Translations under genes and position numbers: made by a program
Shown here: positions 18,982-26,408 of the stretch, in pieces
Layout: the number at the start of each line of letters is the position of its first letter
Numbering within the stretch: the first letter of the stretch is position 1
Assembly: GCA_004764695.1 (NCBI GenBank)
Contig: SMSO01000014.1
Span: 5,694,029 to 5,758,028, forward strand
Source: Schizochytrium sp. TIO01
Taxonomy: Eukaryota > Protista > Bigyra: Labyrinthulomycetes
Length of the DNA stretch: 64,000 bases
Direction: 5' to 3'
Notes under the pieces: model-generated
Told to the model about the DNA's origin: nothing
Database searches by the model: none
What the model saw: the letters and a program-made list of their open reading frames with translations, nothing else

Positions 18982-21900
18982 TTATTCAAAAATATAAGGG
19001 CCTAGACATCCCAATGCTTCACTAAAGGCAACATTTGCAGCTTCCAACATATCAAGCTCTACTTTCTGCGCAGCAATATAGTCCTCTTTTGAACTCAGCA
19101 TACCAGACCTGTTCGCAAGCCGACCTTGGACAATAAGACTATGCTGCACTGAAAACGGCATAGAAAGTGCATCGTTTACAACATGTATACAACGAAGCTC
19201 ACGAGATATCTGTATAAGACTTGTCCTTCTTGTCTTTGCAGAACAAATTTGCTTATTCAATTCGAGCTCCTCGCGCATTTCATTCATCCCCCAGGGCATT
19301 CTAGTACCAGTAAAAACCAAATGACATCAACTCCGTTCGTCAGTTTACAATTTCACGTCATTCAAAGGTACCCACAGTACTGCCAGTACAGTTTCAATTA
19401 TTCTCTGATGTTATCATGCTCTCTGTTAGATCCACACTCAACCAAACATACAATTCCACAAGAAACTTGCAATGGCGCGAAGAAAAAAATCGGCAAAATA
19501 ACACACTAGACAACCCACGAAGCAACGAACCAACCAACCAACCAAGCCTCGTGTAAAAACGAGTCCATAAGCTACGGTGTTGCTAAGACAACTTACGATA
19601 GGGATGTCAGCGACCGGTTCTCTTTCAGCGCCGCAGCCACTGCCTTGGCGCCCTCGTAGCCGATCTTGTTGTAGGAAAGACTGTCGATTTGATTGAATGA
19701 TGGCAACCAATACATTACATTGCAATGCATTACATTGGATACATGCATGGACGTGAGTGATCTAGGTTGGCTTTCACCATTTATCTTTGTTGTGTTGTCA
19801 TTTTGCTCTTTGTTCGATGGATGTATACTCACTCAAACAGACAACCCATCCATCTATCAAACAACCAAGCGATTGCATAAACTTGCAAAACAATACCGAC
19901 CCACCCACCAAACAACAAACCAAGCATCATGTACAAACAAGTCCACGAGCTGCGGTGTTGCGTAGACAACTTACTCAAGTGATGACAGCGACCGGTTCTC
20001 TTTCAGCGCCGCAGCCACTGCCTTGGCGCCCTCGTCGCCGATGTGGTTGCGTTGAAGACTGTCGATTTGATTGAATGATGGCAAGCAATACATTACACGT
20101 TACATATTACAATAGATGCACGCATGCATGCATGGACGTGAGTGATCTAGGTTGGCTTTCACCATTTATCTTTGTTGTATTGTCATTTTGCTCTTTGTTC
20201 GATGAATGTATACTCACTCACACAGACAACTTATCCATCCATCCATCCATCCATCAAACAAACAAGCGATTGCATAAACTTGCATAACAACACCGACCCA
20301 CCCACCAAACAACAAACCAAGCATCATGTACAAACAAGTCCACGAGCTGCGGTGTTGCGTAGACAACTTACTCAAGTGATGTCAGCGACCGGTTCTCTGT
20401 AAACGCCGCAGCCACTGCCTTGGCGCCCGCGTCGCCGATGCCGTTGCGTTGAAGACTGTCGATTTGATGGAATGATGGCAACCAATACATTACACGTTAC
20501 ATATTACAATAGATGCACGCATGCATGCATGGACGTGAGTGATCTAGGTTGGCTTTCAGGATTTCACTTTGTTGTGTTGTCATTTTGCTCTTTGTTCGAT
20601 GGATGTATACTCACTCAAACAGACAACTCATCCATCCATCAAACAAACAAACGATTGCATAAACTTGCAAAACAACACCGACCCACCCACCAACCAACAA
20701 ACCAAGCATCATGCACAAACAAGTCCACGAGCTGCGGTGTTGCGTAGACAACTTACTCAAGTGATGTCAGCGACCGGTTCTCTTTCAACGCCGCAGCCAC
20801 TGCCTTGGCGCCCTCGTAGCCGATCTGGTTGCCCGAAAGACTGTCGATTTGATTGAATGATGGCAAGCAATACATTACACGTTACATATTACAATAGATG
20901 CACGCATGCATGCATGGACGTGAGTGATCTAGGTTGTCTGTCAGCATTTATCTTTGTTGTGTTGTCATTTTGCTCTTTGTTCGATGAATGTATACTCACT
21001 CACACAGACAACTCATCCATCCATCAAACAAACAAGAGATTGCATAAATTTGCAAAACAACACCGACCCACCCAGCAAACAACAAACCAAGAATCATGTA
21101 CAAAACGTCCACGAGCTGCGGTGTTGCGTAGACAACTTACTCAAGCGATGTCAGCGACCGGTTCTCTTTCAGCGCCGCACCCACTGCCTTGGCGCCCTCG
21201 TAGCCGATGCGATTGCTTCCAAAACTGTCGACTTGATTGAATGATGGCCAGCAATACATTACACGTTACATATTACAATAGATGCACGCATGCATGCATA
21301 GACGTGAGTGATCTAGGTTGGCTTTCACGATTTATCATTGTTGTGTTGTCATTTTGCTCGTTGTTCGATGGATGCATACTCAGTCAAACAGACAACTCAT
21401 CCATCCATCAAACAAACAAGCGATTGCATAAACTTGCAAAACAACACCGACCACCCACCAAACAACAAACCAAGCATCATGTACAAACAAGTCCACGAGC
21501 TGCGCTGTTGCGTAGACAACTTACTCAAGTGATGTCAGCGACCGGTTCTCTTTCAGCGCCGCAGCCACTGCCTTGGCGCCCTCGTCGCCGATCTTGTTGT
21601 AGGAAAGACTGTCGATTTGATTGAATGATGCCAAGCAATACATTACATTGCAATGCATTACATTGGATACATGCATGGACGTGAGTGATCTAGGTTGGCT
21701 GTCACCATTTATCTTTGTTGTGTTGTCATTTTGCTCTTTGTTCGATGGATGTATACTCACTCAAACAGACAACTCATCCATCCATCAAACAAACAAGCGA
21801 TTGCATAAATTTGCAAAACAACACCGACCCACCCACCAAACAACAAACCAAGAATCATGTACAAACAAGTCCACGAGCTGCGGTGTTGCGTAGACAACTT

Positions 21901-24900: not shown

Positions 24901-26408
24901 AAATAACACCGACCCACCCACCAAACAACAAACCAAGCATCATGTACAAACAAGGCCACGAGCTGCGGTGTTGCGTAGACAACTTACTCAAGTGATGTCA
25001 GCGACCGGTTCTCTTTCAGCGCCGCAGCCACTGCCTTGGCGCCCTCTGAGCCGATATCGTTGCGTTGAAGACTGTCGACTTGATTGAATGATGGCAACCA
25101 ATACATTACACGTTACATATTACAATAGATGCACGCATGCATGCATGGACGTGAGTGATCTAGGTTGTCTGTCAGGATTTATCTTTATTGTGTTGTCATT
25201 TTGCTCTTTGTTCGATGGATATATACTCACTCAAACAGACAACTCATCCATCCATCAAACAAACAAGCGTTTGCATAAACTTGCAAAACAATACCGACCC
25301 ACCCACCAAATAAACCAAGCATCATGTACAAACAAGGCCACGAGCTGCGCTGTTGCGTAGACAACTTACGATAGTGATGTCAGCGACCGGTTCTCTTTCA
25401 GCGACGCAGCCACTGCCTTGGCGCCCTCTGAGCCGATATTGTTGTATCCAAGACTGTCGACTTGATTGAATGATGGCAAGCAATACATTACACGTTACAT
25501 ATTACAATAGATGCACGCATGCATGTATGGACGTAAGTGATCTAGGTTGGCTCTCAGCATTTATCTTTGTTGTGTTGTCATTTTGCTCTTTGTTCGATGG
25601 ATGTATACTCACTCAAACAGACAACCCATCCATCTATCAAACAAACAAGCGATTGCATAAACTTGCAAAATAACACCGACCCACCCACCAAACAACAAAC
25701 CAAGCATCATGTACAAACAAGGCCACGAGCTGCGGTGTTGCGTAGACAACTTACTCAAGTGATGTCAGCGACCGGTTCTCTTTCAGCGCCGCAGCCACTG
25801 CCTTGGCGCCATCGTCGCCGATATCGTTGTTATAAAGACTGTCGATTTGATTGAATGATGGCAAGCAATACATTACATATGATGCATTACATTGGATACA
25901 TGCATGGACGTGAGTGATCTAGGTTGGCTTTCAGGATTTCACCTTTGTTGTGCTGTCATTTTGATATTTCTTCGATTGATGCATACTCAATAAATCAACC
26001 AAACAAGCAAGCAAGCAAGCAAGCAAGCAAGCAAGCAAGCAAGCAAGCAAGCAAGCAAGCAAGCAAGCAAGCAAGCAAGCAAGCAAGCAAGCAAGCAAGC
26101 AAGCAAGCAAGCAAGCAAGCAAGCAAGCAAGCAAGCAAGCAAGCAAGCAAGCAAGCAAGCAAGCAAGCAAGCAAGCAAGCAAGCAAGCAAGCAAGCAAGC
26201 AAGCAAGCAAGCAAGCAAGCAAGCAAGTAAGCAAGCAAGCAAGCAAGCAAGCAAGCAAGCAAGCAAGCAAGCAAGCAAGCAAGCAAGCGAGCGAGCAAGC
26301 AAGCAAGCAAGCAAGCAAGCGAGCTAGTACGATGTTAACTTACCTCAATCTTGTAGCGCCATTCTGAAGCTTTTCAAGGGCAGTGACAACACGTGGGTGG
26401 TCCGACAT
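18982..26408 (-). CDS. Multi-exon RI-like (NLRC3-type) leucine-rich-repeat protein, ~603 aa: N-cap, 17 single-LRR exons, helical C-terminal domain
   Basis: Exon 1 is 26408-26344 (MSDHPRVVTALEKLQNGATRL+AG|GTAAGT). The 84-nt exons (plus-strand coordinates) are 25755-25838, 25370-25453, 24988-25071, 24603-24686, 24206-24289, 23819-23902, 23435-23518, 23050-23133, 22665-22748, 22284-22367, 21903-21986, 21525-21608, 21141-21224, 20757-20840, 20372-20455, 19975-20058 and 19597-19680; each is bounded by GACAG| and |GTAAGT in phase 2. The last exon is 19300-18982 (TAG|A-ATG-CCC-TGG...TAA). Total 1812 nt with an open frame throughout. Confidence 0.9.
19520..26000. repeat. Tandem array of 17 ~385-bp exon+intron units (the LRR gene body)
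   Basis: Successive exon starts are 378-397 bp apart and the intron parts are near-identical between units. Confidence 0.97.
26004..26320. repeat. (CAAG)n microsatellite, ~79 units, in intron 1 of the LRR gene
   Basis: Direct reading; few interruptions. Confidence 0.97.

Follow-up and report, generated by a model that had tools for sequence, protein, structure and literature searches.

Is the 385-bp tandem repeat between the 5S and 18S rRNA genes of a thraustochytrid chromosome end a spacer, or is it a gene? We analysed a window of 64,000 nucleotides from Schizochytrium sp. TIO01 (contig SMSO01000014.1, positions 5,694,029 to 5,758,028), in which Tandem Repeats Finder places an array at 19529-25989 with a period of 385 bp, 16.8 copies and 91% matches. 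This array is the published LORE-TEARS Group 0 repeat of Aurantiochytrium limacinum: it consists of ~385-bp tandem units between the 5S gene and the telomere-proximal 18S gene at a chromosome end. Group 0 has been described as a 385-bp spacer element between 5S and 18S that lacks similarity to GenBank entries, and a role of LORE-TEARS in chromosome-end maintenance has been suggested (Collier et al., bioRxiv 10.1101/2023.06.15.545109); that preprint nowhere uses the word "leucine". What was published as a spacer is read here as the exons and introns of a gene for a leucine-rich repeat (LRR) protein. Because a telomeric (AACCT)n run forms the start of the window, the LRR gene lies ~19 kb from the chromosome end, and the 18S gene starts 3.9 kb downstream of its stop codon. 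The rDNA-spacer and subtelomeric setting and the Group 0 identity were absent from the first-pass annotation of this DNA, which had been made from its letters alone.

On the minus strand, 17 exons of exactly 84 nt are distributed over 19597-25838 within the 385-bp units, each encoding one ribonuclease-inhibitor (RI)-type LRR. AG precedes and GT follows every LRR exon (17/17; 34 sites), and each comprises 1 nt, 27 codons and 2 nt (17/17), so that any subset of them stays in frame. The 16 inter-LRR introns are near-identical (294-313 nt) and, at ~95% identity, homogenised. Exon 1 encodes an N-terminal half-repeat (…ALEKLQNGATRL). In paralogs, the same exon 1 lies only 292-319 nt upstream of the first LRR exon; the extra length of intron 1 in the window is due to its (CTTG)82 microsatellite. 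The full model has 19 exons and ~603 aa on the minus strand, from the ATG at 26408 to the stop codon that ends at 18982. The first-pass annotation had taken the apparent satellite for a spliced gene with 17 such exons. All 17 were recovered with AG and GT flanks, its end coordinates hold (ATG at 26408, end of exon 1 at 26344, end of the last acceptor AG at 19301, end of the stop at 18982), and exon length, AG/GT flanks and conserved terminal exons support the predicted spliced anatomy over a satellite. The variable decapeptides that it listed for the 17 units were likewise reproduced exactly, including the D or S residue encoded across the splice junction; its statement that all of them differ needs correction, in that units 3 and 4, and units 6 and 16, differ only at that residue.

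Features of the LRR gene and its surroundings (positions in the window)
Feature	Position	Strand	Details
Exon 1	26344..26408	-	65 nt: ATG + 21 codons + 2 nt; ends AG/GTAAGT; ATG at 26408
Intron 1	25839..26343	-	505 nt; contains (CTTG)82 microsatellite at 25996-26324
LRR exons 1-6	25838-25755, 25453-25370, 25071-24988, 24686-24603, 24289-24206, 23902-23819	-	
LRR exons 7-12	23518-23435, 23133-23050, 22748-22665, 22367-22284, 21986-21903, 21608-21525	-	
LRR exons 13-17	21224-21141, 20840-20757, 20455-20372, 20058-19975, 19680-19597	-	
Last intron	19301..19596	-	296 nt; donor TC/GTAAGT, acceptor …tactag/A
Last exon	18982..19300	-	1 nt + 105 codons + stop; family-specific helical C-terminal domain
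5S rRNA gene	26864..26982	+	Rfam RF00001, 96.5 bits; head-to-head with the LRR gene, 456 bp from its ATG
18S-5.8S-28S rRNA cluster	9554..15080	-	Rfam RF01960, RF00002, RF02543; same orientation as the LRR gene
Telomeric (AACCT)n run	1..406	.	window start; N run directly before it in the scaffold
Intron-free paralog	39119..40639	+	506-aa open frame, ~14 RI-type LRRs, then long-helix C-terminal tail

The encoded repeat has 28 residues and the motif LxxLxLxxNxIGxxG…L. Three single LRR exons match Pfam PF13516 (LRR_6) only (E 4.4e-5 to 7.6e-4), one of them at 23.6 bits against a cut-off of 23.4, despite the exon boundary that splits the profile. The intron-free paralog in the window matches the same family at 139 bits (E 5e-42), and its sequence relatives in the PDB include ribonuclease inhibitor, NOD2 and NLRP14 as well as radial-spoke, dynein-regulatory and RanGAP proteins. 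In its AlphaFold2 model (pLDDT 72), 14 strand/helix pairs are followed by helices 395-438 and 467-494; LRRs followed by a helical tail are the architecture that it has in common with the array gene. LRR positions 3-8 are modelled as β-strand and positions 9-11 mostly as loop, with the helix starting at position 12 or 13. Mapped through this model, the variable residues of each repeat occupy the β-strand and the ascending loop, where the first-pass annotation had put them, and positions 7, 8 and 10 are predicted to contribute to the face with which RI-like LRR proteins bind their ligands.

Neither a NACHT/NB-ARC nor a ROC-COR domain was found in the array gene; Pfam has no match for exon 1 or the last exon, and the latter is all-helical. 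Consistent with this, the first-pass annotation had seen no NACHT, Roc, signal-peptide-like or TM-like part, and the gene is hemmed in between the 5S and 18S genes. Its product is predicted from these features to be a cytosolic LRR-only protein with a short cap, 17 RI-type repeats and a helical C-terminal domain. AlphaFold2 models the latter as three long helices (pLDDT 74). No relative of this domain was found in Pfam or the ESM Atlas, Foldseek comparison of the model with the PDB returned generic helical matches only (E >0.7), and an all-library HMMER search with the C-terminal exon retrieved three clusters only. The exon is under weak constraint (dN/dS ~0.8), and a homodimer prediction for the domain, run without controls, scored 0.01, a value that speaks neither for oligomerisation nor against it.

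The array is one member of a family. At 21 chromosome-end loci, 183 of the 185 units sampled contain an intact 84-nt exon. Exon 1 has at least 40 genomic copies with 90-100% identity; all 14 distinct copies examined have the ATG and an open 21-codon frame, and 12 of them have the GT donor at the same place, the other two having a 1-nt alignment gap there. The C-terminal exon has at least 100 genomic copies (34-100% identity), 94 of which are free of stops, and 12 of its columns are invariant among 21 paralogs. Flanks are homogenised across chromosome ends, each chromosome end has a different string of hypervariable residues, and no colinearity was found between the window array and the arrays at other ends. 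These counts are best explained by a gene family with at least 40-100 members, about one for each rDNA unit at the chromosome ends. A scan of metagenome contigs gave no match to it, and the 371-bp and 411-bp arrays of the window yielded nothing in a simple scan for LRR motifs.

Transcript evidence comes from paralogs in MMETSP data, where at least four family members are represented by transcript ORFs that include their C-terminal exon. In one peptide (P0004), the last LRR exon is followed by the junction codon E and then by MSDG…; the last intron, present in the genomic paralog L041, has been removed at splice sites homologous to those in the window. P0004 retains the intron upstream of its LRR exon, and the first Met of the C-terminal exon is where three other transcript ORFs begin, which means that some RNAs are unspliced or initiated internally. 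Identity of the MMETSP peptides to this genome does not exceed 91%; they stem from another strain or from chimeric assemblies. No peptide of 43-138 aa with joined family exons was found in a set of 5.8 billion proteins; the query was the unspliced intron-tail-plus-exon frame at 21524-21760 on the minus strand, and the result applies to proteins of that length. Near-identical exons would in any case be expected to defeat short-read assembly.

These data bear on whether the array is itself expressed. It could instead be complete in appearance but silent, an archive whose LRR cassettes are copied by gene conversion into a small number of expressed members, as with VSG and VLR stores. Such a store would fit the subtelomeric position, the exchange of sequence across the family seen in the homogenised flanks, the different residue string at each chromosome end, and transcripts that are known from paralogs alone. 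However, the array gene has its own ATG exon, a conserved upstream region, 36 of 36 splice sites, a stop-free frame and a C-terminal exon, and the transcription of at least four C-terminal variants means that expression is not confined to one family member. We therefore regard a silent archive as unlikely.

How, then, is variation distributed along a gene of this kind? In the alignment of the 17 units, a comparison that the first-pass annotation had proposed, per-site diversity is 0.585 at exon nucleotides 5-9, 14-16 and 23-25 (11 nucleotides, representing three codons and one dimorphic codon), compared with 0.049 in the remaining exon and 0.048 in the 16 introns (Mann-Whitney p = 9e-14). The predicted binding-face residues are thus ~12 times more variable than the introns, and the introns and helix scaffold are as near to invariant as had been described. 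Indels affect none of the exon columns but 77 of 357 intron columns. Amino-acid entropy reaches 3.2-3.6 bits at three positions and stays below 1 bit elsewhere, except at the dimorphic position 9. The GAC/TCA dimorphism at codon 9 looks old.

Substitution rates sharpen this contrast. The scaffold has a dN of 0.026 and a dS of 0.083 (dN/dS 0.32), whereas dN at the hypervariable codons is 1.15, ~14 times the scaffold dS and ~24 times the intron diversity. The fast change that the first-pass annotation had ascribed to the variable codons therefore far outpaces both introns and synonymous sites. These comparisons of dN, dS and diversity, with introns and scaffold as the reference, show statistically that diversifying selection acts at LRR positions 7, 8 and 10, and less at positions 5 and 13. 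In hypervariable codon 4, diversity is 0.73 at the first position and 0.56 at the second, while the fourfold-degenerate third position stands at the neutral level (0.074), which argues against a local mutation hot spot. The same third position weakens ancient protected haplotypes as the only source of the diversity. Within codons, dN/dS is only 1.15-1.5, because synonymous diversity in hypervariable codon 3 is high (0.55).

An expressed gene might also owe its variable sites to a local mutation process, or to a loosening of constraint on an RI-like protein with a housekeeping task, such as one in the nucleolus, in the axoneme or in nuclease inhibition. Many RI-like LRR proteins are non-immune, as the radial-spoke, dynein-regulatory and RanGAP relatives illustrate, and the raised synonymous diversity in codon 3 and the weakly constrained C-terminal domain point the same way. 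Relaxation alone is ruled against by the excess of hypervariable dN over scaffold dS and intron diversity, since relaxation cannot exceed the neutral rate. Further counter-evidence is the neutral third position of codon 4 beside saturated first and second positions, the absence of stops, and position 10, which admits polar NAN codons only; moreover, at least 40-100 copies, each with a different surface, would be left unexplained. Taken together, these points make a housekeeping origin of the variation improbable.

The absence of stops also decides whether the frame is real. That no exon contains a stop, as first annotated, is weak evidence in the window alone (2.9 expected, P ~0.05) and decisive across the family, where 549 hypervariable codons in 183 exons contain 0 stops against 31 expected (P ~9e-15). 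Tandem enhancer repeats are common in rDNA spacers. The view that the array consists of non-coding rDNA/telomere spacer repeats with a structural or regulatory role and an incidental open frame can draw on that background, on the published 385-bp element between 5S and 18S with no similarity and a proposed chromosome-end role, and on the ~127-aa open frames on the plus strand, but as a sole explanation it is extremely improbable and is refuted by the coding statistics, namely the missing stops, an exon length of exactly 84 nt with conserved AG/GT beside introns that carry indels, the scaffold dN/dS, the LRR_6 matches of single exons (in round figures E 4e-5 to 8e-4, which also bears out the RI-like identity first annotated), the conserved start and C-terminal exons, and the junction spliced in a paralog transcript. 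A spacer role besides coding is possible. Plus-strand open frames of ~127 aa across whole units were rejected as candidates; intron indels break them in 9 of 17 units. As a whole, the observations are best explained by the 385-bp array being a 19-exon gene in the 5S-18S spacer, with an LRR-only product and membership of a large, diversifying family of putative recognition proteins, a reading that we consider probable. A published class of "non-coding" chromosome-end repeats is thereby re-read as genes, and tandem-repeat masking can hide whole gene families.

The exon-per-repeat organization is reminiscent of the LRR-ROCO genes of Ectocarpus, in which each LRR occupies its own exon of constant length, exon duplication and shuffling have taken place, the concave face holds the sites under positive selection, and immune recognition has been proposed (Zambounis et al. 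2012, PMC3341825; Front Plant Sci 2024, PMC11378527). Both are stramenopile families with a constant-length, frame-preserving exon per LRR (here 17/17, in the family 183/185) and fast-evolving sites on the binding face (here a predicted one, with dN 1.15 against a scaffold dS of 0.083). However, the Ectocarpus exons have 72 nt and encode 24-aa "typical" LRRs rather than 84-nt RI-type repeats, and they are fused to a ROC-COR GTPase, whereas the array gene has no GTPase and an unrelated helical C-terminal domain. Introns that are ~95% identical and integration into the rDNA unit at chromosome ends further set the array gene apart. It would represent a second, independent stramenopile case of LRR diversification with one exon per repeat, and its contrast between scaffold and binding face is much sharper than that in Ectocarpus.

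Vertebrate NOD/NLRC genes also have exons of one 84-nt repeat. With RI/NLRC-type proteins, the array gene shares 28-residue repeats, the LRR_6 match, a β/α alternation that is predicted from the model of its paralog, and a predicted intracellular character; it differs in having no NACHT or other NTPase domain and in a much greater uniformity of its repeats, of which only three to five positions vary. As in lamprey VLRs, diversity is concentrated on the LRR concave face and, as in var and VSG families, the subtelomeric location favours ectopic exchange. A VLR gene is incomplete in the germline and is completed by copying flanking LRR cassettes, whereas the germline array gene is complete from ATG to stop and has canonical introns. 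Unlike VLR, var and VSG genes, it displays no sign of somatic assembly or mutually exclusive expression, and its product, predicted to be intracellular, has no signal peptide, LRRNT/LRRCT caps or membrane anchor.

Based on these findings, we propose a plausible route by which the family diversifies. The host would be an Aurantiochytrium-type thraustochytrid that carries an LRR gene in the spacer of a subtelomeric rDNA unit. Judging from the pattern of variation, exchange by unequal crossing-over and gene conversion, both inside one chromosome end and from end to end, would hold introns and scaffold close to identity. Diversifying selection lets amino-acid-changing mutations accumulate, chiefly at LRR positions 7, 8 and 10 and less so at 5 and 13. 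Each gene would then present a different binding surface, the family would constitute a repertoire of intracellular recognition proteins, and the shared C-terminal helical domain may act as a common output or assembly module. A role of the family in recognition, and perhaps in defence or self/non-self discrimination as first annotated, is putative. This candidate repertoire would be physically tied to rDNA and telomeres, the regions in which concerted evolution and ectopic exchange are at their strongest. The host, which carries persistent mirusvirus infections, can be cultivated and transformed, so that the proposal is open to direct tests.

A more far-reaching version, in which each rDNA unit at ~50 chromosome ends has its own hypervariable LRR gene and subtelomeric/rDNA recombination is the diversity engine of an anticipatory intracellular repertoire, is at present doubtful. 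Its targets may include the mirusviruses that persistently infect the host. Because the LRR exons are symmetric and have identical splice sites, the repertoire might be enlarged further in the RNA by exon skipping.

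Tandem Repeats Finder delineated the array at 19529-25989 as 16.8 copies of a 385-bp unit with 91% matches, adjoined by a (CAAG)82 microsatellite. Minus-strand translation revealed the motif G-A-K-A-V-A-A-A-L-K-E-N-R-S-L-T-S-L once per unit, and anchoring on this motif located 17 exons, all of exactly 84 nt and flanked by AG before and GT (GTAAGT) after, with introns of 294-313 nt. Each of the 17 comprises 1 nt, 27 codons and 2 nt; the first residue of the repeat therefore spans the splice junction, where GA/T encodes D and TC/T encodes S. The proposal of the first-pass annotation that an apparent 385-bp satellite has the anatomy of a spliced gene, with an 84-nt exon per unit, is borne out by all 17 exons, and the 17 variable decapeptides that it listed were all recovered from the exon translation. 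The exons are likewise free of frameshifts, as it had claimed, with indels in none of the exon columns versus 77 of 357 intron columns. Whole-unit plus-strand frames of up to 127-128 aa (19183-25854) occur in only 8 of the 17 units and were judged incidental because intron indels break them in the remaining units.

The predicted gene, made up of 19 exons and 18 introns, encodes about 603 aa (the sum of exon lengths plus junction codons). The last two bases of exon 1 complete the S of the first repeat, and the last LRR exon ends in TC/GTAAGT at 19597. At least 40 genomic copies of exon 1 with 150 nt upstream were found at 90-100% identity; the ATG and 21-codon frame are retained in 14 distinct copies, 12 of which have the GT donor in the same place, the other two showing a 1-nt alignment gap there. 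The last exon has at least 100 genomic copies (34-100% protein identity) and is stop-free in 94 of 100 among the matches listed. An alignment of 21 paralogs contains 12 invariant and 18 nearly invariant columns, and dN/dS among paralogs is about 0.8; the exon stays open yet is only weakly constrained overall. AlphaFold2 predicted three long helices for it (pLDDT 74). A Pfam search gave no match, a Foldseek comparison of the model with the PDB returned nothing significant, and no look-alike was found in the Atlas. Most of intron 1 consists of (CTTG)82 at 25996-26324; this intron is much shorter in the paralogs, in which 292-319 nt separate exon 1 from the first LRR exon downstream.

Features of the array gene and its chromosome-end surroundings (window coordinates)
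Feature	Position	Strand	Remarks
Telomere repeat (AACCT)n	1-406		406 bp; N run directly before it in the scaffold (L052:1-6029, another stretch of this genome)
371-bp and 411-bp tandem arrays	1155-2187, 3279-5928, 6521-8559		Between telomere and 28S gene
18S, 5.8S and 28S rRNA genes	15080-9554	-	Rfam; same orientation as LRR gene
Last exon of array gene	Acceptor ends 19301; stop at 18982	-	105-codon frame
Exon 1 of array gene	ATG 26408 to 26344	-	65 nt; ends AG/GTAAGT
5S rRNA gene	26864-26982	+	Rfam; head-to-head with LRR gene
Intron-free paralog	39119-40639	+	506 aa; about 14 RI-type LRRs, then long-helix C-terminal tail

A HMMER search of the C-terminal exon against 1.84 billion representative proteins retrieved three clusters only, whose members derive from MMETSP transcriptomes and from a few JGI/IMG contigs. 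The transcript ORFs include four different C-terminal variants (P0001, P0004, P0009 and P0010). P0004 reads from an LRR exon through junction codon E into M-S-D-G-L…, and relative to its closest genomic locus (L041, elsewhere in this genome) the last intron of roughly 280 nt is gone, exactly at the predicted donor and acceptor; read past the donor, the L041 frame meets a stop four codons into the intron. P0004 derives from a related copy that is 84-90% identical to L041. Splicing is thereby supported at one junction, in a paralog, and we infer from the conservation of splice sites, exon length and frame that the other junctions, including those of the array gene, are spliced as well. P0004 starts with M-Y-C-L-P-S-F-N-Q-I-D-S, the translated tail of the upstream intron, and in the other three ORFs the start coincides with the first Met of the C-terminal exon, so the RNA pool includes molecules that are unspliced or internally initiated. 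The MMETSP peptides match the TIO01 genome at no more than 91% and thus come from another strain or from chimeric assemblies. No peptides of 43-138 aa with family exon words were found in the protein collection. At L041:1091-1860 (contig G000:C36), the last intron has a GCAAGT donor and is a GC-AG intron.

Across the 64-Mb genome, the 385-bp unit was matched at least 388 times, for the most part close to contig ends, and 25 loci besides the window were retrieved. Among 185 units located by BLAST across 21 chromosome-end loci, with no requirement for an intact exon, 183 carry exact 84-nt exons between AG and GT. Both exceptions lie on one 18.5-kb contig (L009, G000:C29). Their broken-frame exons, the sole two in the sample, measure 85 and 87 nt with an extra G in GGGC runs, and may reflect assembly consensus errors rather than pseudogenes. 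The earlier observation of stop-free exons extends to the family: the 183 exons contain no in-frame stop, where 31 were expected from the per-position base composition of the three hypervariable codons (P about 9e-15). Overall, we consider it likely that the 385-bp array is a protein-coding gene. Repeat residues 3, 4 and 6, where 13-20 different amino acids occur, have amino-acid entropies of 3.57, 3.32 and 3.22 bits, respectively, compared with 1.5 bits at residue 9 and less than 1 bit at all others. The hypervariable strings are entirely different at other chromosome ends; only 4 of the 17 strings of the window recur in other sampled loci.

Per-site diversity over the units was 0.585 at the variable codons (exon nt 5-9, 14-16 and 23-25), 0.049 at the other 73 exon positions and 0.048 in 301 well-aligned columns of the 16 internal introns, only three intron columns reaching 0.45. 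The predicted excess of variable codons over introns was thus confirmed (Mann-Whitney p = 9e-14). By the Nei-Gojobori method, the scaffold codons of the window gave dS 0.083 and dN 0.026 (ratio 0.32), indicative of purifying selection. In the three hypervariable codons dN was 1.15, which exceeds the scaffold dS about 14-fold and the intron diversity about 24-fold. The expectation of elevated dN/dS at these codons therefore holds clearly against the scaffold dS but only modestly within the codons, where the ratio is 1.5 (1.15 family-wide) because dS is itself high (0.54).

At hypervariable codon 4, diversity is 0.73 at the first and 0.56 at the second position but 0.074 at the third within fourfold-degenerate families, which is the scaffold fourfold level (0.077) and near the intron level. 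Such a neutral-level third position argues against a mutation hot spot and equally against an ancient haplotype shielded from homogenisation, either of which would have elevated it as well. The pattern thus points to selection for amino-acid change. Codons are position-specific, with essentially one per amino acid per position: Tyr is encoded by TAT at residue 3 and by TAC at residue 4, GAT accounts for all 28 Asp codons at residue 6, and residue 6 uses NAN codons (polar residues) exclusively, never TAA or TAG. Residue 9 (exon nt 23-25, e.g., 25816-25814) is GAC Asp in 86 and TCA Ser in 81 of the 183 exons; these codons differ at all three bases with few intermediates, and the dimorphism seems to be an old variant that has been reshuffled between units. 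Even where two units show 0-1 differences across 230 sites of flank and scaffold, they differ at 19-39% of the nine core hypervariable bases. Judging from this pattern, unequal crossing-over and gene conversion would keep the units alike, and selection would drive and protect change at a few surface codons.

Single exons match only Pfam LRR_6, of the ribonuclease-inhibitor (RI) type (E 4e-5 to 8e-4). The intron-free paralog, 12.7 kb from the ATG of the array gene, shares its architecture minus the introns: it matches LRR_6 with 139 bits, the PDB sequences closest to it are those of ribonuclease inhibitor, NOD2, NLRP14 and several axonemal RI-like proteins, and AlphaFold2 (pLDDT 72) predicted 14 strand/helix pairs and, after them, long helices at the C terminus. 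In 12 repeats of this model, LRR positions 3-8 form the strand, loop predominates at 9-11, and the helix starts at 12 or 13. The hypervariable residues of the array gene correspond to LRR positions 5 (the junction codon), 7, 8, 10 and 13. The proposed single variable surface was partly tested by this mapping, in which, on the paralog model, these residues lie together as a single continuous stretch along the strand and ascending loop. In established LRR structures, RI-like ones included, ligands are contacted through this part of the repeat.

The array gene lacks the defining features of NLR, ROCO and VLR proteins and has those of RI-like LRRs and of LORE-TEARS Group 0. Among described systems, its closest counterpart is the LRR-ROCO family of Ectocarpus, whose LRRs are each encoded by one 72-nt exon and whose exons undergo shuffling, with positively selected sites located on the concave face (PMC3341825; PMC11378527). 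Unlike that family, the array gene has an 84-nt RI-type repeat, near-identical introns and its own helical C-terminal domain, and it lies within a chromosome-end rDNA unit; consistent with the reported absence of NACHT and Roc domains, it has no ROC-COR or any NTPase. We infer a role in recognition or defence.

The N run followed by telomere repeat implies that the start of the window is a true chromosome end and that 'contig' C13 is a scaffold joining several chromosome pieces. The layout of the window is that of the typical Aurantiochytrium limacinum chromosome end, in which ~385-bp 'Group 0' LORE-TEARS lie between 5S and 18S (bioRxiv 10.1101/2023.06.15.545109). These elements were described as without similarity to GenBank sequences and were proposed to act in chromosome-end maintenance (Collier et al., bioRxiv 10.1101/2023.06.15.545109). 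The word 'leucine' is absent from the text of that report, and no mention of LORE-TEARS was found in the other literature searched. By position, the 371-bp and 411-bp arrays are LORE-TEARS Groups 2 and 1, respectively; a simple six-frame LRR motif scan of them gave no match. A perfect telomere-like (GGTTA)5 run occupies 18236-18261 in the rDNA spacer, about 720 nt downstream of the LRR gene stop, and a perfect (AAGAC)42 microsatellite lies at 59397-59609.
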